64,000 nucleotides of DNA from Calcarisporiella thermophila CBS 279.70 (taxonomy: Eukaryota; Fungi; Calcarisporiellomycota). A program made the translations under genes and the position numbers. Where the stretch lies: positions 1,440,610 to 1,504,609 of the forward strand of contig NW_027192191.1 of assembly GCF_041956535.1 (NCBI RefSeq), written 5' to 3'. Below, one piece after another: positions 12,236 through 26,916 of the stretch (position 1 is the first letter of the stretch; each line of letters begins with the position of its first letter). Below the pieces are notes generated by a model. That model made no database searches. It was not told the origin of the DNA and was given only the letters and a program-made list of their open reading frames with translations.

Positions 12236-14334
12236 TCAACACAAATCCAGTCGTACTCGCACATTTTTTGCCAGTCGTGCTAGTCGAAGAGCTGCCTCAC
12301 CCATCACCGGGTTTCCTCGGAGAGTCAAAAACCGTACCCCTGCAAGCGACGAGTTCATAGCTCTCACCAGCGACTCTGCACCATCGGGACCAATCTGATT
12401 CCTATCCAAATCGAGGGTGGAGAGGGAGTGATTTTTCATCAGGCCTACCGCCAAAAACTCGGCCCCAGCATTCTCAATATAATTTTCGGCAAGAACCAGT
12501 GTGCGCAGGGTGGTGTTGGCCTCAAGAGCGCGTGCAAGATATTCGCAACCTTTGGATCCAATCTTGTTATATCCTAAATGCAGCGTACAGAGAACGCTGT
12601 TGATCCGGAGGCTATGAGCTAGTTGCTCGCACCCTTTGGAGCCAATTTCATTAGCACGCAGATCGAGGAAACGGATGCGACGGTTCAACGAAAGGGCACG
12701 ACCGAGCGCTTCGGCGCCACGATTACGAGTATTGTTCCAGGAGAGATCGATATGCTCGAGGGCCACGTTGGGATGCTCCAATGTCCGGGCGAAGACCTCA
12801 ATGCCTAGCAAGAATAAAGTTAGAGCTCATTCGATGATGAAGAAGGGGGGAGGGGAGGAGAGAAGGATAATAACGATAGAAATACCTTTGTCTCCGATCT
12901 CATTTCCACTCAAATCAATAAAAGTCAGCGTCTGATTTACATCCAATGCTTTCGCAATATGCTCCAAGCCTTGATCCGACACACAATTGTCTGTCAGATC
13001 CAGGCTTCGCAGCCTGTGATTCACCCGAATAGCCTTGGCAAGCAACACGGCGCCCAGATTCTCGATCTCGCTTCCCTTGAGGTTCACCTTCACAAGGGTG
13101 TCGTTTTCCATGAGCGTTTCCGCGAACAATTGCCAGCTGGGGCCAGGCTGAAAGTCCAGCGCATGCAGCGAGCGTATTGCGGGGTTGTACTTGAGAATAC
13201 TTTTGAGCTGGTCGGCAGTACTCACGTCTGCCGCGTGCAACCGTAGTGTGGTGAGTTGGTCAAGATCCTTGATGGTCTCTTGCTGTAGCTGATCTATCCG
13301 CTTTTCAAGCGCGAGAGTTTGGAGGCGGATGGCGGTAAACGCCTCCTTGAGAGGCTCATATTTGCAATGGCTAAGATGATGGCCGATTTTCTCGCGCTCA
13401 ACCATCTCAGTGCAACCGCCCATGTGCCCGAGAATGTTGCGGTGTGGACAAGGGATCACGCGTTTAGGGCATACCTCGTCATGCTCGTATTGGTCACAAA
13501 GTCTAAACACTGCATGACACATTTTACAGGGCACCTCTCTATTAATGCAGTCATTCGATACGTGTTCCTTGAGAAAATGGAATGAATGATAGCGAGTGAG
13601 TGAAGATATTCATGAAGGCCGACAGAGGATGACCATCTACCTTGAGCTCCTCTTCCTTATAGAATTTCTTGGAACATCCAAGAGAACAAGAAATCATTTT
13701 AAAGGCGCAACTTTTACGATGTTCATCGATTAGTTTACGAGGCAATATGGCTTTGCAATCTATGGACACCAGGTTAGTAACCACCAGAACAAAAATAATG
13801 GAACTTAGAGAGACGGCCTCACCTGGATATTCTTCATGAACGTTACAATAGACCAGCATTTCCTGGCACTCCGTCTACAGAAATAGAATAGAGTTAATAT
13901 TTCGGGGAGATAGGAAACCAAGCACCGCCAGTGAACATCACCTTTAAGTGGTGCACTAATTCGTCGCGTCGGCCCACCCATGCACAGCTCTCCCAGAAAC
14001 ACCGTACCTCTAGCTGATTCACTATGCGCTCGATTCGAACCGACCGTTTTAATTCCATCTCGTTCAAAGGGGCTCTGCAAAGAGCACATGTTTTGCTGCG
14101 CGCAATTGCACTCAAAATACAAGAACGGCAAAAGTGATGTCGGCAACGACGTGCTTGCGCGACATCCACAAATACATCATGACAAATACTGCAGATGAGA
14201 TCGGGGTCTATACCCTCGGGATCGACATAACGGCATTCTTGCTGTGCTTTCTGCAGAATTTGCTCAGGGGTGTTAGAGAGTGGTGGGGCTGAAGAGGAGA
14301 GCGGTGGGGCTGAGGAAGACGGCGGAGGGTTCAT
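12236..14334 (-). CDS. RING finger + TRAF-type zinc fingers + coiled coil + ribonuclease-inhibitor-type LRR protein (putative E3 ligase)
   Basis: C3HC4 RING CSICHDVF…CRHHFCRSC…CALC; repeated H-x3/4-C…C-x2/3-C TRAF-like fingers across short exons; LEKRIDQLQQE coil; ~28-aa LRRs (LxxLxLxxNxIGxxGxxxLAxAL). Exons join in frame through four GT-AG introns. Confidence 0.85.
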
Positions 14335-17093: not shown

Positions 17094-18955
17094 ATGTTGC
17101 CGACGGAAGTATACAACGCCTGCGTCTATGTTCCCCTTGCTCTATTCTTTGCATTGGGATGCTATACCGGCCTGAGGTTCCGTGAGGAGAATAAAAAGCT
17201 CGAGGATTTCCTTGGAGCCGTGCGTTCTCAGTCAGCCCTCACCCTGGGAATCAACTTTTTTGCCGCATGTAACTAACAGCTGTTGTTTTTGCAAATGATT
17301 TGCTCCGCTTTTGCTTATCGCTTGTTTTGTTTTTTCTTGCTCATGTTCATTTTATAGCCGTTGGAACATGGATTCTCACCACACTACCAGATGTCGCCAC
17401 CATTGCAGGACTCCAGGGGCTTATCGTCTATGTTATCGCTTGTGTCGCGCCTATCCTCTTGCTCTCCGTTCTTGGTCCCATCATTCGCCGCAAGAACCCC
17501 GATGGCTTCACGCTTAACCAATTCATTTACAAGCGATTCGGGCGGGTCGAGCACCTTTTTGTCAGTATCATCACGATTATTTACATGGCGGCCTTGTTAA
17601 TCGGAGAGCTTAGCGCAGCATATCAAGTGTTCGACATGCTGACCGGGATTAATCCGTTGCCCGTGGTGATAGTTGTAGTGATTCTTACCTCAATTTATAT
17701 TGGTAATTCACCATTTTCCGATGGTCGTATGTCTCAGGACTAACAAGCCATCGTATCCATAGCGGTGGGCGGTTTCCGTGCCTCTTTGATGACAGACTCG
17801 TTCCAAGGCTGGATCATCCTGGCTTTGGTTATCATCGGGGCGATCACGGCGGGGACCAGTGTCAAGGTCACCCACGAAAACATCGTCGCAAACCCATGGG
17901 TCACCCAACAAACGAAGATAGGGTGGGAACTGCTCTATATTCTGCCAGCCGCCGTGACAGGAGCCAACCTCTTCCACCAGGTAACCCGGCTATTGACCTC
18001 TGGTTGACCGAGTTTCTCTCTAACCGGATCTTGCTCTCCCAAGGGCTTCTGGCAACGCACCTTTGCATCGCGCACCGATCGCGATCTCCTCTATGCCGTC
18101 GTTATTGGGGTTACTCTGATGCTCCCCGTCCTCTTCCTCGTTGGATTTACCGGCATCCTTGCTGCTTGGGCCGGGGTCTTCCCTGGGCCTGATCCAGAGA
18201 ACCCCGTTCCCGGCTACCTCACCTTCTTTGCCTTGTTCAAGCTGCTACCGGACTGGGTCGTCGCGATGATTGTGGTGCTCGCTGCAAGTCTGATGTGCTG
18301 CTCCGTGGACACCCTACAGTCAGCCCTTATTTCCACGCTGTCGAGCGACCTCTTTTCCAACCGTGTGCCGCTGCTGGGAGTGCGGGTGATCTGTGTCGTG
18401 ATCAACGTCCCCATCGTCATTCTGGCCCTCAAGAACGTGGACCTGCTACAAGTGTTCCTTGTGGCTGATCTGCTTGCCTGCGCCACCATCCCTCCCGTGA
18501 TGCTGGGGCTGAGCGACAGACTCTTCTTCCTCAACGGAGAGGATGCCCTCATCGGCGGCCTAGGCGGTCTCTTCAGCGTGTTTATCTTCGGATGGGCGTA
18601 TCTTGGTGACGCTCTCAGTGGAATCAGGCTTTTGATTCTACCCAACGGCCTCTATGCCGATAACGAAGAGGTCTTGGGGGCTTTCCTTGCTGCTCCCGTG
18701 GGCGCCATTGTCTTTTGCTTTATCAGCTTTGGCGTAAGGCAGGCGGTTCGGGTGCTGTGGTCGCGTGTTCAGGGCAAACCTTACGAGTTCCCGAAAAATC
18801 CCGCACACCTGAGCATGACTCTCCCACGGTCCGACGTCGGTGCGGATCCATTGTCGACGCATGAGGGCCACTATGGGGCGTGTGCCGACGAGGAGCGAGC
18901 AATGAATTCAAAACTGGCCGCCGAGGAGGGGAAAAAGGACGTCCTTCCCAACTAA
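17094..18955 (+). CDS. DUR31: Sodium:solute symporter (SSF/SLC5) of the DUR31/NCU01977-like group, probable thiamine or thiamine-precursor transporter
   Basis: Multi-TM protein with SSF motifs (F…KRFG, GGFRASLMTDSFQG, FHQGFWQRTFA, SVDTLQSA). Three introns. An adjacent TPP aptamer supports the thiamine link. Confidence 0.85.
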
Positions 18956-19225
18956 TATCCGTGTGCTTCATAATATCTTTTTCGCCGTAAGTATTTAATT
19001 TCTCTTCGCCTCACCCCCTTCTCTCCTCTATATACTATTCCCCTATTTTTTTATTATATATATATACACATATCTTAATTTATGAAGTCGGTTCACTTCC
19101 CCCTTATCCCTCTATAGATTTAGATTTTTAGATTTTATTTATTCGCTTATTTATATATACATATATACATGGTGGAGGGGGGTTTTACTTTGGTTGTGGG
19201 GCTGGAATAAAATGGATGGGGTGGG

Positions 19226-19320
19226 ATGAACCTCCTCCATTTTCTTTTCCAATCCCATTTTGCTCTCTCCATTATGGAGAGGGAAGGGGAGGGGAGGAAT
19301 GGAGAATGGGGGAGGTTTGT
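19226..19320 (+). other. Long imperfect RNA hairpin immediately 5' of the aptamer
   Basis: ATGAACCTCCTCCATTTTCT pairs with GGAGAATGGGGGAGGTTTGT, and inner CTCTCTCCA-TTA-TGGAGAGGG. Deviations from Watson-Crick within these stems are G-U wobbles on the + strand. Confidence 0.7.
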
Positions 19321-19343
19321 TCGTATTTCATTTTTTTTTATTT

Positions 19344-19456
19344 TGAAAAATGGGCTACGGGTGGTTGATCTGCTCCATGTGAAGCAGCTCAGCCTGAGAT
19401 ATTACCGTCTGAACTTGACCATGGTTAATACCTGCGGAAGGAATGCCTATTTTTCA
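19344..19456 (+). ncRNA. TPP (thiamine pyrophosphate, THI-box) riboswitch aptamer
   Basis: P1 UGAAAAAUGGGC/GCCUAUUUUUCA (12 bp); P2 ACGG/CCGU; P3 GGUUGA…CUGCU/AGCAG…UCAGCC; invariant UGAGA J3/2; core UGAACUUGA-CCAUGGUUAAUACCUGCGGAAGGA with P4, P5, L5 UAAU and GCG J5/4. Matches the fungal TPP consensus. Confidence 0.95.
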
Positions 19457-20066
19457 TTCTACGGTTATTTTTCCCTTTTCACCCCCTTTGCCTTGCTCTG
19501 CTGGTTTGGCTCGGTGATGGTTCCACGTGTGCTTGAGACCGTTCCCATAGCGATTGGGGCGTAAGTAGAAACAAGGTTGCAGGAGAGGGGTGGGACGAAC
19601 CAGGAGGGAAGGCGGGGAGGGAAAGAAATGGGGAGATATCATATTAGGTTAGGTTGTGTGCTTGTGCTTTATCACAGGCCACCCTGAACCTAATCTAGTT
19701 TCCTATGCGCCTCAGGGAGGAGGAGCAAATGAGAAGGGATCAATCCAAATTAAAGTCGATAGCACAAAAGTGGTGAATGCGAAAAATTTTCAACAGAGTG
19801 CCACGAGACACGTAGCAGGGCTAGTGACGATAGTAACAAAAGGGATGGGGGGGGGGGGGCACAGCTGTAGTAGGAGGACTGGTCGCGGTCAAGGAAGTGG
19901 GGGTAGCAGTAGAGGTAAACGTGTATTAACAAAAGCACACACAAATAAGAAGGAACGGAATGGAATATACAAATAGATACAGTATTAGACAATATTCGCA
20001 TTTCTACATCACATACACAGACCGCCATCCATTAAATAATGACCTTGCTGATCACAGATCAGCAGG

Positions 20067-21052
20067 CTATGCGTAGAGGCTATGCCTTTCCACCCTTTGT
20101 CTCTTCCACCCGGTCCCCACTGAGACGCCGTCCCACGCGCCGTCCCACGCGCCATCCCATTCTCCGGCCCCTGCGCTGCTGGGTGCGGACGTCTCCCGCC
20201 CGAGCACCCGCTCCTTCAGCATCCCCAGCTCCGCCTGCATTCCCCTGACCATCTCGACCAGCCCGCGGTTCTCGCGGTGCAGAGACTCGATGGCCAGGCG
20301 CAGTGAATCCATCTCCCGGGCCTTTTGCTCCAGATCCTTGATGTATCTATCCTTGCGCTGCCGGAAGGCGCGCTGGGCGGCGCGATTCTGGGCGGCCCGG
20401 CGGGCATTGGCGGGCTTCTTCGATGGGTGTTGCGCAGACTGTTCAGGCGTCTGCGGCGAATCAAGGAGCTTGTTGGGGGTGGAGGGGGAGGGCGTGGTTG
20501 GCGAGGGCAATGGATCTGCTGTAGGCGGGGTGTAATCTAGAGTCATGTGCCAGAAGGGGGAGGAAGAAGGAGAGGGAGAGCGGTCAATAAATGAATGTGT
20601 CAAAGAGAGAACAGGTTCAAATAAAGAAACGTTTACAAAGAGACAAAAGAGGAGGAGAAAGCAGAAAAGGAATGGATCAACTATGACCAAGACTCACCAA
20701 GAGATATTCTCGGCTCAAATAGTGAGGACCACGGCGCTTCTCCGTATGAAAACTGGCCTTGAGGTGCGGGGGGTTGGCCCTCCAGGATTCCGTCGAAAGA
20801 AGCGCTGACCGGCGTTGGCAACGGGGACTGCCCCATATACATGTCTGGGAGGTGCATTGGTGTGAGCGGGGTCGCCAACGCCGACGACCAAGGCTGATTT
20901 GAGGACCATAGCGGGCAAGGGGAGCTGGAGCTGGAGCTGGAGCTGGGGGTGGCCGTGGTGGTGTGATTAGGATTAGAACTATTGTTCATCCTGAGAAGCT
21001 GCTTCGAAGCTTCGCTGTCTCCTGACGATAGAACTGATATTTGGAGAGTCAT
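20067..21052 (-). CDS. bZIP transcription factor (AP-1/Yap-like basic region)
   Basis: RRAAQNRAAQRAFRQRKDRYIKDLEQK followed by a leucine zipper. Exons 21052-20698 and 20536-20067. Confidence 0.9.
20126..20159. repeat. 12-bp tandem repeat x2.8 encoding WDGA repeats in the bZIP C-terminus
   Basis: CGCCGTCCCACG CGCCGTCCCACG CGCCATCCCA. Confidence 0.85.
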
Positions 21053-23265
21053 TTTAAAAATGGAAAAGAGGGAAAAAAAACTATATTTTTAAAGCTAGAG
21101 AATATTAGTCTTCCGTAAAGAACAAAAAGAAGAAAACAGAAAGAGGAAAAAAAAAATCAAACAAAAGCTATAGCAGTTTAGGTACTAGCGCGAAGAAGCG
21201 TGTGAAGGAGGAGAGCAAGGTGGGTGAAGGAGAGGAAAGAGTTAAAGGAGGGCAGCACAAGAAAAAGAAAGTTAATAAAAGGGGGAAAAGGGGGGGAGAG
21301 AAAAGAAGAAAAACCGTATTTAAATGATATGTGTCAACAGCGGAGAAGCCGTGAGCCTGCGAAACACAATCGTGCCCATCGGACTGCACAAGAAACTCTT
21401 TCTCTCCAACCGATGGGAAAATATAAATAGAAAATAAGATACAATGCGGCCTCACTCATGATAAAGTTAATTTCTGCGGATATTCCGAACCTCCCCCCCC
21501 CCCCCTCCTCTCTCCCCTCCCTCTCTCCTGCTCCACTCTTTGTCCATTTGCCTTGACGTCAGCCGGACTCCCTGTGATTTTGTTCTAGGGTTGTGGATTG
21601 TACAGCTGCAAATAGGGGAAAATGCCACCTGCCTAGTGATCCGAGAAGGCCGGCTTCCGTGAGAACGTAAATGCAAAAAAAAAAAGAATTCTCCCCCATT
21701 CTTCCCAGCCAGAGTTGATGGGGAGGAGGAAGCGACAGGAGTCAGAAGAGTGCAACGTGCAACGTAGTTTTAATTTTCTTCCTTTCCTTTCCTTGGTTTG
21801 ACTTGGCTTTGCCTTGTCCTCCTGCCGCCTCCCTCACCCTCTCTCTCTAACCCCTCCCTCCCTCTCTCCTTCCCTCCCCGGGTCCGTGACCATCTTTTGT
21901 TGGGTCTTCCCCAAGCACGCATTAACCCATGCTCTCGATCGGCTGCAGTAGCTTTATTAAACCGTTGGCGAACATGTCGCATTGTTTCTCGCACAGCGCT
22001 CTTTTTCCTTATTCTGCTGTATTCTAGTTTATTTGATCCCTGATCTACAGCCCCCCTCAGCAGCGATCCAGACGGCAGAGGGGGGGGGCGGCATGGCGCG
22101 AAAGGGCATAAGCATTGCACCGCTTGTAAGAGCGCAATAAACCAGTAGTCCAATGGGTGCTCCCAAGAGAGGAAGGTGGCTGTATCCAAAGAGTTTGTGA
22201 CCCCGTGTAAGCAAACCTTAGAGAGAAAAGGGAAAGATCAGCCGCTACACATGAGGTTGAGTTGAATGTGTTCAGGGCTCTCATTCTCTCCCCTCCTCCC
22301 CTTCCCCCCCCTTCCTTCCCTCTCTTAGGATCGACAATTCAATCTTCTTTGGTGCCCTCCCCCAACCTAGGCCCTCCATTGGTGCCTCCTCATCTCCCAC
22401 GTGAGTTCGTGGAATGGGCCGTGCTACAGCCGCGGGGTCTGGGCGCTACGAGCACAGGTGCAGCCCGCCTCAGCCTAGCGGTGCACCTGCGATACGGCCG
22501 GGAAAAGGCCCCTCTGCCTGAACCTTAGAGTTACCGTGCGGATGCTTTTCCGTAGCATTTCTAATCAAGTGTCAGTGTCGTTTCTTGCGTGGAAGCATCG
22601 GCGCGCGGAGTCCAGAGGGGGGAACTGAATTCTTGGAGGAAAAGACGAGGGATCGAGATCCGTTCTCGACCAACTCTGACTGGATCGGCCGTTCCTCTCC
22701 TGTCGACCGCCATGGGTGGGTTTCGCTGGTCTCCCTGCGTTCCCAATTATTAATTTTGTCCAACCTTGTAATTCTACCGCCGTACATTTATTAATCTCGG
22801 CTGCTTTTTTTTTAACCCATTCGTCTTGCACTACCCGGTTTCCCTGGATTCTAGTTCCTCTTCAGCTCCAGCCTCAACTCTAACCAGCAACCAAAAACTA
22901 TGAGATCACAAATCAAGGTTCAATAGTGTGGTCCATGTTTTTTTTTTCCTCTGAGAAATGAGGCGCTCTTCCCCTCACTCCTCCCCCCCCCCAACCTCAT
23001 CTTTTCCTCAATCCCCTCCCCCCTCCATCCTATCAGAAAACCGAACTCCAAGATGCAAGTCACAATTGCGTGACTGTTCAGAGGCTTATCCGTGACTGTC
23101 GATTATTTGCGTCATCATACGATCTTTGAGCGAGGAAGAGTTCGTAAGTGTTCTTTTCGATAGCCTGGGAACTTTCTATAGCGAATTTTGCCGAGCATAA
23201 TCTCGTATCCCAGTCCATCCGTAGCAAATTTAACACAGGCCCGCAGGTGGTATATAAATGGTGCT

Positions 23266-26200
23266 ATGGCAGTCAATTCCATGCTCTCCTCGGCTTGTGT
23301 CTTCTTAGTTCCCAAGCGGACCATTCCCATTCCAAGTCAATCGTCGATCCGAATCGCTCGTTTACCACAAACACAGCTCCGATCCCCGGCGAACTATGGC
23401 TGGCTTCGATGCTCGAGCATCAGTGCACGTTATTACACATCACCGGGGCGTGCGCCGATTCATCGGGATCGGAGATGGCTCTCAACGAGAAACTCGAATG
23501 AGCTCGGCCCACACGAAAAGGGGCACAATTCGATAGAAGCCCTCGGAAGGAGACGGTCTCCATCGAATGGAGCACCCGCAAGCAGCGGGGCGAATAATTC
23601 AGGGGAGGGGGAAGGGACCGGCGGCGATGATCATGGTCATGGACGCGATCCCAAGGACGGAAGCGAAGGAGGAAGTGGCAGCAACGGGGAAGGAGGGGCT
23701 CAGAGCGGAAGCGGCGGATCAGGTGGTGGCGAGAGCGGTAGCGGGGGAGGAGGTTCACCATTCGACGGAATGCCCCGCACTTTGAACGTGTTAGAGAACT
23801 CCCTCCAAAAGCCCTCTATACCCGACAATTACCCCCAAGTCCTAGCCCTCCCTATCACACGTCGCCCCCTCTTCCCAGGCTTTTACAAGGCTGTTGTTGT
23901 GAAGAACCCACAGGTCACCGCTGCCATTAAGGAGCTGGTAAAGCGGGGACAGCCGTATGTGGGAGCTTTCTTGTTGAAGGACGAGGAACAAGACGTCGAT
24001 ATTGTGAGCGCTGAGGACCAAGTGTATAAGGTGGGCGTCTTTGCGCAGATCACAAACGTGTTCCCGGCAGGGAACGCAGACGACCAGTCTTTGACCGCTG
24101 TATTATATCCACATCGCCGGATCCGGATGTCCGAGCTTATCACTCCAGGGGCGAGCGAGGATGGCGCGCCCAAGCCAGCTCAGGCCAAGATAGAAGAGCT
24201 GCCAGAGGAACCTGCAGTGGCTGGTGGTGAAGGTGAGTCCGCCTATCCATACCCGTCAACTTAAAAGTATGTTTTTTTTTTCCCTCCCTTAATTAATAAC
24301 TCTATATAGAAACAGCTATCGAAAAATCGCAAGAGCAATCACCCCAGCAGCAACAGCAGCAGCAGGCTCAATATGCTACCACATTCCTCCGTAACTATGC
24401 GGTATCGCTTGCAAACGTGGAGAATCTTGCGGATGAGCCTCACAGCAAACGCAACCGGCTTGTACGCGCCGTCACCTCGGAAATTGTGGCCGTCTTCAAG
24501 GACATTGCCGCACTGAACCCGCTCTTCCGGGACCAGATTGCGAACTTTTCGATGTCGCACGCTGCAAGCAACATCTTCGAGGAGCCGGCTAAGCTCGCCG
24601 ATTTTGCTGCCGCCGTTTCCGCGGGCGAGCCACGCGAGCTGCAAGAGGTGCTTGAGAGTCTGGTGATTGAGGAGCGGTTGCAGAAGGCGCTTCTGGTGCT
24701 GAAGAAAGAGCTGCTCAATGCTCAACTACAGAACAAGATTAGCAAGGATGTGGAGAGTAAAATTGCCAAGCGGCAGCGAGAGTACTATCTAATGGAGCAG
24801 CTGAAGGGGATCAAGCGTGAGCTGGGGATCGAGACGGACGGGAAGGAGAAGCTGGTCGAAAGCTTCAAGGAGAAGGCGGAGAAGCTTGCTATGCCCGAGC
24901 AAGTGAAGAAGGTGTTCGAGGAGGAGGTCAACAAGCTCGCGCACCTGGAGCCCGTTGCTTCGGAGTTCAATGTCACGCGTAATTACCTGGACTGGTTGAC
25001 CCAGATCCCGTGGGGTCGGCGCTCGATGGAGAACTACAATATCCAGCATGCCGTTTCGGTGCTGAACGAAGACCACCACGGTCTACAAGACGTGAAGGAT
25101 CGGATATTGGAATTCATTGCCGTAGGGAAGCTGCGAGGAACGGTGGAGGGGAAGATTTTGTGCTTGGTTGGGCCTCCTGGTGTCGGAAAGGTAAATTAGG
25201 AGAAGAGAATTTTAGGCGAGAATATGTCTTACTAAATCAACCATTATTGCGTTTCCTTCCCCCTCCCTCTCCCTCCCCCCCCTTTTTTTTGGGCATAGAC
25301 TTCTATTGGCAAATCTATTGCTCGTGCCCTCAACCGTGAATTCTATCGCTTTAGTGTTGGCGGTCTTACAGATGTGGCTGAAATTAAGGGCCACCGTCGC
25401 ACCTACGTCGGTGCAATGCCTGGGAAGGTGATCCAGGCGTTGAAGAAGGTGCAAACGGAGAATCCACTGGTGCTTATTGACGAAGGTACATTCCTCTATC
25501 TGCGGTATTGTTTTTTTTTTCATACTCACCTCCCTCTGGCTTTCTCCCTCTTGCTTAGTTGACAAAATCGGTCGTGGCCACCAAGGTGATCCCTCGTCTG
25601 CTTTGCTAGAGTTGTTGGACCCCGAGCAGAATTCCTCGTTCCTTGACCATTACATGGATGTTCCCGTTGATCTTTCCAAGGTGCTCTTCGTTTGCACTGC
25701 AAATGTCCTCGACACAATACCGGGCCCATTGCTCGACCGTATGGAAGTCATCCAACTCTCTGGATACGTTGCTGAGGAGAAACTTGCCATCGCGTCGCAG
25801 TATCTCGCGCCCCAGGCCAAGGCGGCGGCCGGATTGGAGCACGCCCACGTGGAGCTACATTCGGATGCCATGGAGGCTCTCATCAAGAACTACTGCCGAG
25901 AGAGCGGGGTCAGAAACCTGAAGAAGCACATCGATAAGGTTTATCGGAAGGCCGCCTTGAAAATCGTGCGGGACATTGCGGGGGAGGAACGGCTTCCGTC
26001 CCAAGAGCTGGATAGTCCTGAGGTGAAGGACCGGAGTCGCGTTCACGACCCTGTCTCCGCCCAGCATGACCGAGAAAAGGTGAGCATAGGGGATTCGGCC
26101 GGTGAATCCGCCAAGAGCGAAGAGAAGAAAATCACCATGAGCGAACGCAGCCCTCTAGCCGTTCCGCCCGATGTGCAAGTCGATATCACGGCGCAGAACC

Positions 26201-26916
26201 TGCAGGAGTACGTGGGGGCGCCCATCTTCCACTCCGACCGCCTCTACGATCGCACTCCCCCGGGGGTTGTGATGGGGCTGGCCTGGACTTCGATGGGAGG
26301 CTCGTCGCTCTACGTGGAGTCGGTGCTGGAGGCCGCGCTCCGCTCGCAAAACTCTCACCCGATGATTTCCAAAACGGGCCAGATGGGCGACGTGATGAAG
26401 GAATCTACCAGCATCGCGTACACCTTTGCCAAGGCATTTGTTGCGCGGCGGTGGCCCTCGAACCGATTCTTTGAGCACGCCTCCATCCACCTGCATGTCC
26501 CCGAGGGGGCAACGCCCAAGGACGGGCCGTCGGCCGGCATTACCATGGCCACCTCGCTGCTCTCGCTCGCGCTGGACCGCCCCGTGAACCCAGACGTGGC
26601 GATGACGGGCGAGCTGACGTTGACGGGCAAGGTGTTGAGGATCGGGGGGCTTCGCGAGAAGGTGGTGGCGGCGAAACGGTCCGGGGTGAAGAAGGTCATC
26701 TTCCCCAAGGCCAACATCTCGGACTGGGAGGAGCTGCCCGACTACGTGAAAGAGGGGGTGGAGGGGGTTCCGGTGGAGTGGTATAACGAGGTGTTTGGGG
26801 AGTGTTTTGGCGAGGTGGACGGGGATGCTGTGGGCAAGGAGGTGTGGGGCCCGTATTTCGACCGAGTTTTAGACAAGAAGGCGGACGTTGACCAGGACGA
26901 GGGCATTGTGGCGTGA
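23266..26916 (+). CDS. PIM1: Mitochondrial Lon protease
   Basis: Arg/Ser-rich presequence, LON N-domain ([12 protein letters not shown]), Walker A GPPGVGK|TS, Walker B VLIDE, catalytic PKDGPSAG and IGGLREK. Three introns. Start ATG at 23266 or 23281. Confidence 0.97.

Follow-up and report, generated by a model that had tools for sequence, protein, structure and literature searches.

Determining what a TPP aptamer does downstream of the stop codon of a fungal transporter gene is the question raised by this locus of Calcarisporiella thermophila. In characterised fungal TPP switches the controlled intron is 5' or internal, and regulation from the 3' UTR is described as a plant mechanism. Fungal TPP riboswitches were reportedly the subject of a comparative study by Moldovan and colleagues in 2018. 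One survey recognises four types in fungi, each of them 5' or internal, with an unvalidated Postia eIF5B aptamer as its sole 3'-UTR case (PMC5882874), and a TPP riboswitch has been noted in basal fungi with no position stated (PMC4133162). The accessible surveys and literature yielded no account of a TPP class or mechanism in the 3' UTR of fungal genes. The window analysed here is the whole stretch of 64,000 nucleotides of C. thermophila DNA, and coordinates refer to it unless a locus handle is given. The gene in question and its convergent neighbour are:

17094 to 18955, forward strand: DUR31/NCU01977-orthologous SSF transporter gene, exons 17094-17268, 17358-17702, 17763-17980 and 18044-18955
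17269 to 17357, forward strand: DUR31 intron 1, 89 nt, without an aptamer
20067 to 20546, reverse strand: bZIP gene, convergent, its stop 352 nt beyond the acceptor at 19713-19715

C. thermophila DUR31 encodes 549 aa in four exons, its coding introns are all GT-AG (89, 60 and 63 nt), and it ends in a TAA at 18953-18955. The initial annotation had described it as a DUR31-like transporter, which our analysis bears out: the product has a PF00474 (SSF) domain match, it groups with orthologues in the tree, and intron 1 occupies the codon position of the long aptamer-bearing intron in Geosiphon and Lipomyces DUR31. Its homologues in database searches are the fungal 'urea transporter' group; the searches were run exon by exon, and exons were joined for the frame check and the tree only. 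In this tree, which does not include the N. crassa and Candida proteins that have been characterised, C. thermophila DUR31 is sister to Jimgerdemannia (99/96), and Geosiphon and Dikarya form a separate clade (100/99). The C. thermophila genome holds at least one SSF gene, DUR31 being the sole match found. The product is a probable thiamine importer, judging from PMC5997356. Elsewhere in the window, ORF translations read by eye suggest an ordinary Lon-like protease gene with introns (23188-26916, forward strand) and a gene with RING-like and leucine-rich-repeat-like exons (12236-14334, reverse strand).

Downstream of this gene lies the following element:

19347 to 19460, forward strand: TPP aptamer (RF00059), P1 extending to 19344-19355 paired with 19445-19456

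The RF00059 aptamer at 19347-19460 is real. A complete sense-strand aptamer had been proposed about 390 nt past the stop, and the element starts 392 nt 3' of it on the sense strand, matching the entire model (positions 1-105) at 48.8 bits with E 3.1e-8. This score falls under the Rfam gathering score of 54.3 bits, so that a default gathering scan is blank here; the RF00059 search suggested with the initial annotation therefore yields the match in E-value mode. The ligand motifs, namely CUGAGA (the pyrimidine-binding motif), UAAUA (L5) and GCG (the pyrophosphate motif), are all intact, and P1-P5 pairing is present, with P1 extendable to 12 bp and one inserted base in P5. When seven aptamers were compared on the structure of the Rfam consensus, 89% of cells were paired, and two-sided changes occurred in 16 of the 22 pairs. 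Judged from its sequence, the aptamer would bind TPP.

Candidate processing signals surround the aptamer:

18987 to 18992, forward strand: candidate donor D1, GTAAGT, 31 nt 3' of the stop
19073 to 19131, forward strand: rival branch-like TCTTAAT (19073-19079) and three TAG acceptors (19115-19131), read from the sequence
19206 to 19211, forward strand: proximal AATAAA, predicted mostly paired in free and aptamer-formed states alike
19561 to 19566, forward strand: candidate donor D2, GTAAGT, giving a 155-nt intron of ordinary size to 19715
19689 to 19694, forward strand: candidate branch point CCTAAT, inside the hairpin 19643-19699
19713 to 19715, forward strand: candidate acceptor CAG, 22 nt from the branch A
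19749 to 19754, forward strand: distal ATTAAA, 34 nt 3' of the acceptor

The donor 31 nt beyond the stop, the branch point with its acceptor, and the AATAAA between D1 and the aptamer had all been pointed out before, and each is found where it was placed. They differ in weight: the aptamer and the donors are above chance (P ~0.017 for a GTAAGT within ~100 nt of a stop, and P ~0.007 for two GTAAGT in 760 nt), and the AATAAA and the branch point, each alone, are at chance level (expectation 0.31 for one AATAAA in 390 nt and ~2 for CTRAY in 760 nt). Branch-to-AG distances in C. thermophila's own introns are 14-24 nt. Joining D1 to 19715 gives a candidate 729-nt intron, and splicing of D1 to the rival TAGs gives one of 131-145 nt. 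On these signals, ATTAAA 19749 would end a D1-spliced mRNA ~90 nt past the stop, compared with an unspliced UTR of about 275 nt. A long unstable UTR requires this ATTAAA to be skipped, and the RNA would therefore continue into the convergent bZIP gene.

The region 3' of the DUR31 stop is unusually structured, with a folding z of -4.4 compared with -1.6 to +0.2 in nine control non-coding regions (-4.9 with block shuffles, the controls reaching -1.7 at best). The predicted elements are:

18937 to 18948, forward strand: segment in the last DUR31 codons complementary to the aptamer 3' strand (19436-19452), a candidate long-range anti-aptamer element
18998 to 19027, forward strand: pyrimidine tract pairing with the purine tract 19602-19629 (pair probabilities 0.78-0.99)
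19205 to 19343, forward strand: long hairpin adjoining P1 (z -6.0), whose 3' arm 19327-19336 can pair with the P1 5' strand
19643 to 19699, forward strand: hairpin burying the branch point CCTAAT (z -3.2)

The helices between 18998-19027 and 19602-19629 are predicted to put D1 beside the branch-point hairpin. Such an arrangement is consistent with a real 729-nt intron, in a genome with short introns here. In the unbound fold, P1 gives way to pairing with 19327-19336, and 18942-18979, immediately 5' of D1, becomes the partner of the aptamer 3' half; the anti-P1 element costs 2.4-5 kcal/mol in local folds. When the aptamer is enforced, 19205-19212 pairs with 19336-19343 (p 0.86-0.90). The folding calculations gave no masking of D1 in the unbound state, the ensemble pairing the donor flank, not D1. 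A direct duplex of D1 with P4/P5 (-12.0 kcal/mol) was rejected as no better than with shuffled flanks (p 0.24); P4/P5 pairing with D2 reaches -11.3. Direct masking of AAUAAA was likewise dropped, as it was not robust to the folding window or temperature, and miRNA-family matches on the 19226-19320 hairpin were discarded with scores far under their cut-offs.

Plant THIC provides the precedent for 3'-UTR control (PMC10226581, PMC3597705), and the present locus shares with it an aptamer past the stop and a donor soon after the stop, with a candidate processing signal between. It differs in that the gene is a fungal transporter, D2 lies 3' of the aptamer, a poly(A)-like ATTAAA stands directly past the acceptor, and donor masking is unsupported computationally. 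In addition, the plant acceptor AG sits in P2 (bioRxiv 10.1101/2022.01.04.474978), whereas the P2 5' strand of the C. thermophila DUR31 aptamer is ACGG, with no AG, and two candidate CAGs occur in P3; therefore the whole aptamer would sit inside the intron, unlike in plant THIC. The plant-type architecture put forward in the initial annotation thus survives in part. Its 3' position and the donor near the stop hold, and the order of elements recurs in two loci, but the P2 AG is absent, D1 masking is not borne out by folding, and the spliced UTR, at ~90 nt to ATTAAA, would not be long. We predict that the architecture works like the plant THIC type without being a strict member of it. Diatoms also carry 3'-UTR aptamers on THIC and SSSP genes, of which a tested one was non-regulatory (bioRxiv 10.1101/2022.01.04.474978), and for that reason function is not assumed for the DUR31 aptamer. 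The diatom cases are alike in that the aptamer lies in the 3' UTR of a thiamine transporter of the SSS family and has no AG in P2, but no 3'-UTR splicing was found in diatoms, whereas splice signals flank the C. thermophila aptamer.

Comparison with fungal systems leads to similarly partial likenesses. Neurospora NCU01977 and Candida DUR31 (type II, long internal intron) belong to the orthologous family and share with our locus a long structured intron and a possible pairing over long range with the 3' strand of the aptamer, from ~490 nt upstream. However, the homologous internal intron of C. thermophila is 89 nt long and empty, and because the aptamer lies past the stop, its output cannot be a premature ORF stop, unlike in those two genes. 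Neurospora NMT1 and THI4 (type I), as well as the computational type III, resemble our locus in having two candidate donors for one acceptor and a P4/P5 complementary to donor-like sequence, but the C. thermophila DUR31 aptamer is 3', there are no uORFs, and the second donor is 3' of the aptamer. For C. thermophila DUR31, a reading as an internal (type III) intron was discarded, the donor being 3' of the stop. The coding sequence closes 5' of the aptamer, and the orthologue's stop is at the equivalent place, which sets the locus apart from fungal types I-IV (PMC5882874).

Eight thiamine-gene loci in Mucoromycota and chytrids, one of them on a metagenome contig, carry a 3' aptamer. The one further RF00059 match in the C. 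thermophila genome (62.2 bits) lies 160 nt past the stop of NMT1 (L001:1338-1776; about 567.0-567.5 kb of its contig), and this Mucoromycota NMT1 is identical to VTP21DRAFT_252. Here, a GTAAGT overlaps the stop, a second donor, GTAACT, lies at +87, AATAAA stands at +132, immediately 5' of the aptamer, and a long pyrimidine tract is present 3' of it. The two best pairing partners of this NMT1 aptamer are located at its two donors. A search of C. thermophila THI4 found no aptamer. Jimgerdemannia DUR31 (L009:4484-5336) has a tandem pair of aptamers, scoring 63 and 42.6 bits, past an in-frame stop. The public 708-aa model of that gene, RUP49885.1, is spliced into or through the aptamers and its C-terminus is probably spurious; this splice model, which enters the first aptamer, was not counted as splicing evidence. 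Sense-strand aptamers also lie 3' of the NMT1 stop in Mucor hiemalis, Linnemannia zychae, Polychytrium aggregatum, Rhizoclosmatium sp. and metagenome contig L043. At the remaining aptamer-bearing NMT1-like metagenome loci, the aptamer is 5' of the match or inside it (L062; weakly L069). The TPP-like nhmmer match at L062:846-902 lies within the NMT1 locus and had no cmscan confirmation at E 0.01. No aptamer was found in Dimargaris DUR31 (two species), Irineochytrium SSF, Neoconidiobolus NMT1 or Catenaria NMT1.

A survey of aptamer position in relatives, as had been proposed, places the Jimgerdemannia DUR31 aptamers 3' of the stop as well and the Geosiphon one in an intron. Across the DUR31 orthologues compared (Calcarisporiella, Jimgerdemannia, Geosiphon and Lipomyces, with Dimargaris searched and none found), position differs, because Geosiphon and Lipomyces carry the aptamer in a long internal intron, and Calcarisporiella and Jimgerdemannia carry it in the 3' UTR, their equivalent intron 1 being short and without an aptamer. 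We read this as an aptamer that probably moved, being 3'-UTR in Calcarisporiella and Jimgerdemannia and in an internal intron in Geosiphon and Dikarya. The database model of Geosiphon DUR31 (L011:2169-2826) has an 11-codon mini-exon within its riboswitch intron, possibly reflecting alternative splicing or an annotation artefact.

Candidate splice signals tend to accompany the 3' position. A strong donor within -4 to +100 of the stop occurs at 5/8 of the 3'-aptamer loci compared with 3/24 controls (Fisher p 0.012), which is suggestive only, because the donor set was chosen post hoc and the loci are related. Two layouts can be distinguished. In one, shared by DUR31 of C. thermophila and Jimgerdemannia and by C. 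thermophila NMT1, the donor comes first, AATAAA and then the aptamer follow, and the series closes with a branch point or a pyrimidine tract free of AG; CTAAT lies 230 and 220 nt 3' of the aptamer in C. thermophila and Jimgerdemannia DUR31, respectively. The other, seen in NMT1 of Mucor (L072:2899-3075), Linnemannia (L073:3003-3221) and L043 (L043:1453-1584), runs from the donor to a branch point ~30 nt on and then through 140-190 nt devoid of AG up to an AG at the aptamer 5' edge, with AATAAA 3' of the aptamer in Mucor and Linnemannia. In Mucor NMT1, P1 when extended runs up to the candidate splice junction, and pairing is predicted between the 3' half of the aptamer and the tract past the branch point (-17.6 kcal/mol). 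Neither of the two chytrid NMT1 loci has a clear donor near the stop. The donor overlaps the stop in C. thermophila NMT1 and Jimgerdemannia DUR31, and splicing there to most acceptors would replace the stop with a non-conserved tail. An internal-intron reading of NMT1 was rejected, as the spliced extensions are unlike the C-terminus of other NMT1 proteins and two chytrid NMT1 proteins stop at this very position.

Taken at the level of the locus, TPP-dependent control through 3'-UTR splice sites in some form is quite likely. In its leading version, to which we give a probability of roughly 0.4, the element is a 3'-UTR TPP riboswitch that lowers transporter expression at high TPP, with the polarity known from plants. 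At low TPP, the aptamer 3' half would pair with D1-flanking sequence and the P1 5' strand with 19327-19336; D1 would stay unused, and the RNA would be cut after AATAAA 19206, leaving a stable UTR of about 275 nt. At high TPP, the aptamer would fold and D1 would be spliced to 19715, the ends of the 729-nt intron being folded together, so that the proximal poly(A) signal is removed and a poorly expressed isoform results. The computational tools show the aptamer, its position, the conservation of that position, the donor enrichment and the unusual structure; TPP binding, splicing, poly(A) site use and the direction of control in DUR31 are inferred. Plant polarity leads because the donor overlaps the stop in two sister loci, where splicing would replace the protein's natural end; such stop loss in C. 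thermophila NMT1 and Jimgerdemannia DUR31 fits splicing as the off state. Classical EJC-dependent decay follows a roughly 50-nt rule, for which a junction 31 nt past the stop is too close. Against plant polarity count ATTAAA 19749, the unexplained D2, the missing AG in P2 and the two chytrid loci without a clear donor, as well as, in the folding models, a D1-aptamer duplex at chance level, a D1 that is no less accessible when unbound and an AATAAA predicted to be paired in both states.

A serious rival for the C. thermophila DUR31 locus, albeit a rather unlikely one, transfers the two-donor logic of Neurospora to the 3' UTR and reads it out by NMD. At low TPP, D1 splicing would remove the aptamer intron and leave ~90 nt of UTR up to ATTAAA 19749 (on); at high TPP, D2 would be freed or the intron retained, giving a ~660-nt structured UTR whose exon junction, 605 nt beyond the stop, would make it a target of nonsense-mediated decay (off). 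In favour of this account are the two GTAAGT in 760 nt (P ~0.007), the P4/P5 pairing that is about equal for D2 (-11.3) and D1 (-12.0), the ATTAAA just past the acceptor and the buried proximal AATAAA. C. thermophila also encodes Mago nashi and UPF1 (EJC/NMD genes), in N. crassa, EJC-dependent NMD is set off by 3'-UTR introns once they are spliced (PMC10578600), and the upstream donor is the one used at low TPP in fungal types I-III (PMC5882874). However, C. thermophila NMT1 and Jimgerdemannia lack a strong donor past the aptamer, and where the donor overlaps the stop (C. thermophila NMT1 and Jimgerdemannia DUR31), its use in splicing would abolish the normal end of the ORF; furthermore, a second donor 3' of the aptamer was not found among the characterised fungal cases in the literature consulted.

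That the aptamer is conserved but non-regulatory, or only binds TPP, with splice signals that are constitutive or due to chance, strikes us as improbable. The score under the Rfam cut-off, the inserted P5 base, the lack of an AG in P2 and accessibility calculations without a clear switch would all agree with it, as would the absence of regulation by the diatom THIC 3'-UTR aptamer and the 3' aptamers of diatom SSSP genes (DUR31-homologous); yet thiamine genes in two phyla keep the 3' position, the aptamers covary, donors are more frequent than in controls, and the anti-P1 element costs only 2.4-5 kcal/mol. Direct control of polyadenylation without splicing is very unlikely. Under it, P1 formation would free 19324-19343 to cover AAUAAA and cause read-through towards the bZIP gene, consistent with the pairing of 19205-19212 to 19336-19343 in aptamer-enforced folds and of the same arm to P1 when free; but the difference in AAUAAA opening energy ranges from none to ~2 kcal/mol by folding window, is sometimes reversed and is nil in C. 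thermophila NMT1 and Jimgerdemannia, and the donor enrichment is left unexplained. Equally doubtful is a cassette exon, in which D1 to the TAGs (19117-19131) and D2 to 19715 are spliced constitutively and TPP decides between inclusion and skipping (D1 to 19715) of an exon bearing the aptamer. Introns of ~60-90 nt at these C. thermophila loci, the presence of the branch-like TCTTAAT and TAGs, and NMT1 introns ending 5' of the aptamer in Mucor, Linnemannia and L043 speak for it, whereas its branch point is weak and 39 nt from the AG, and its TAG acceptors are predicted to be paired.

Beyond this locus, we lean towards a widespread, unrecognised and functional 3'-UTR TPP class on NMT1 and DUR31 in early-diverging fungi (Mucoromycota, Chytridiomycota), acting through splicing, 3'-end choice or NMD, with an aptamer that moved within the DUR31 lineage and plant-like 3' control that arose or persisted in fungi too. 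If true, a recurring 3' class would change the account of eukaryotic riboswitch evolution, including the move of an aptamer within an orthologous gene. For the chytrid and Mucorales 3' cases, our literature searches, whose coverage excluded subscription papers, found nothing further. The initial annotation had supposed that surveys might already list 3' aptamers of early-diverging fungi; in the accessible portions of the sources, some of the aptamers are indeed listed, but filed as '5' UTR' or 'intron'. In the supplement of PMC5882874, the NMT1 aptamer of Mucor circinelloides stands 47 nt from the 3' end of the gene, yet it is labelled 'intron, type III', and the accessible part of PMC11683625 labels Mucorales NMT1 aptamers '5' UTR type I' or 'intron type III'. 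By eye, the M. circinelloides NMT1 aptamer of the latter, as far as that source is accessible, looks orthologous to the M. hiemalis 3' aptamer. If our reading is true, Mucorales switch positions need re-checking in the survey that proposes them as antifungal targets. In the accessible part of the PMC11683625 supplement, the '5' UTR' labels of Mucorales NMT1 conflict with the 3' position in M. hiemalis, and the THI4 and 'sugar transporter' labels seen there may deserve re-checking as well.
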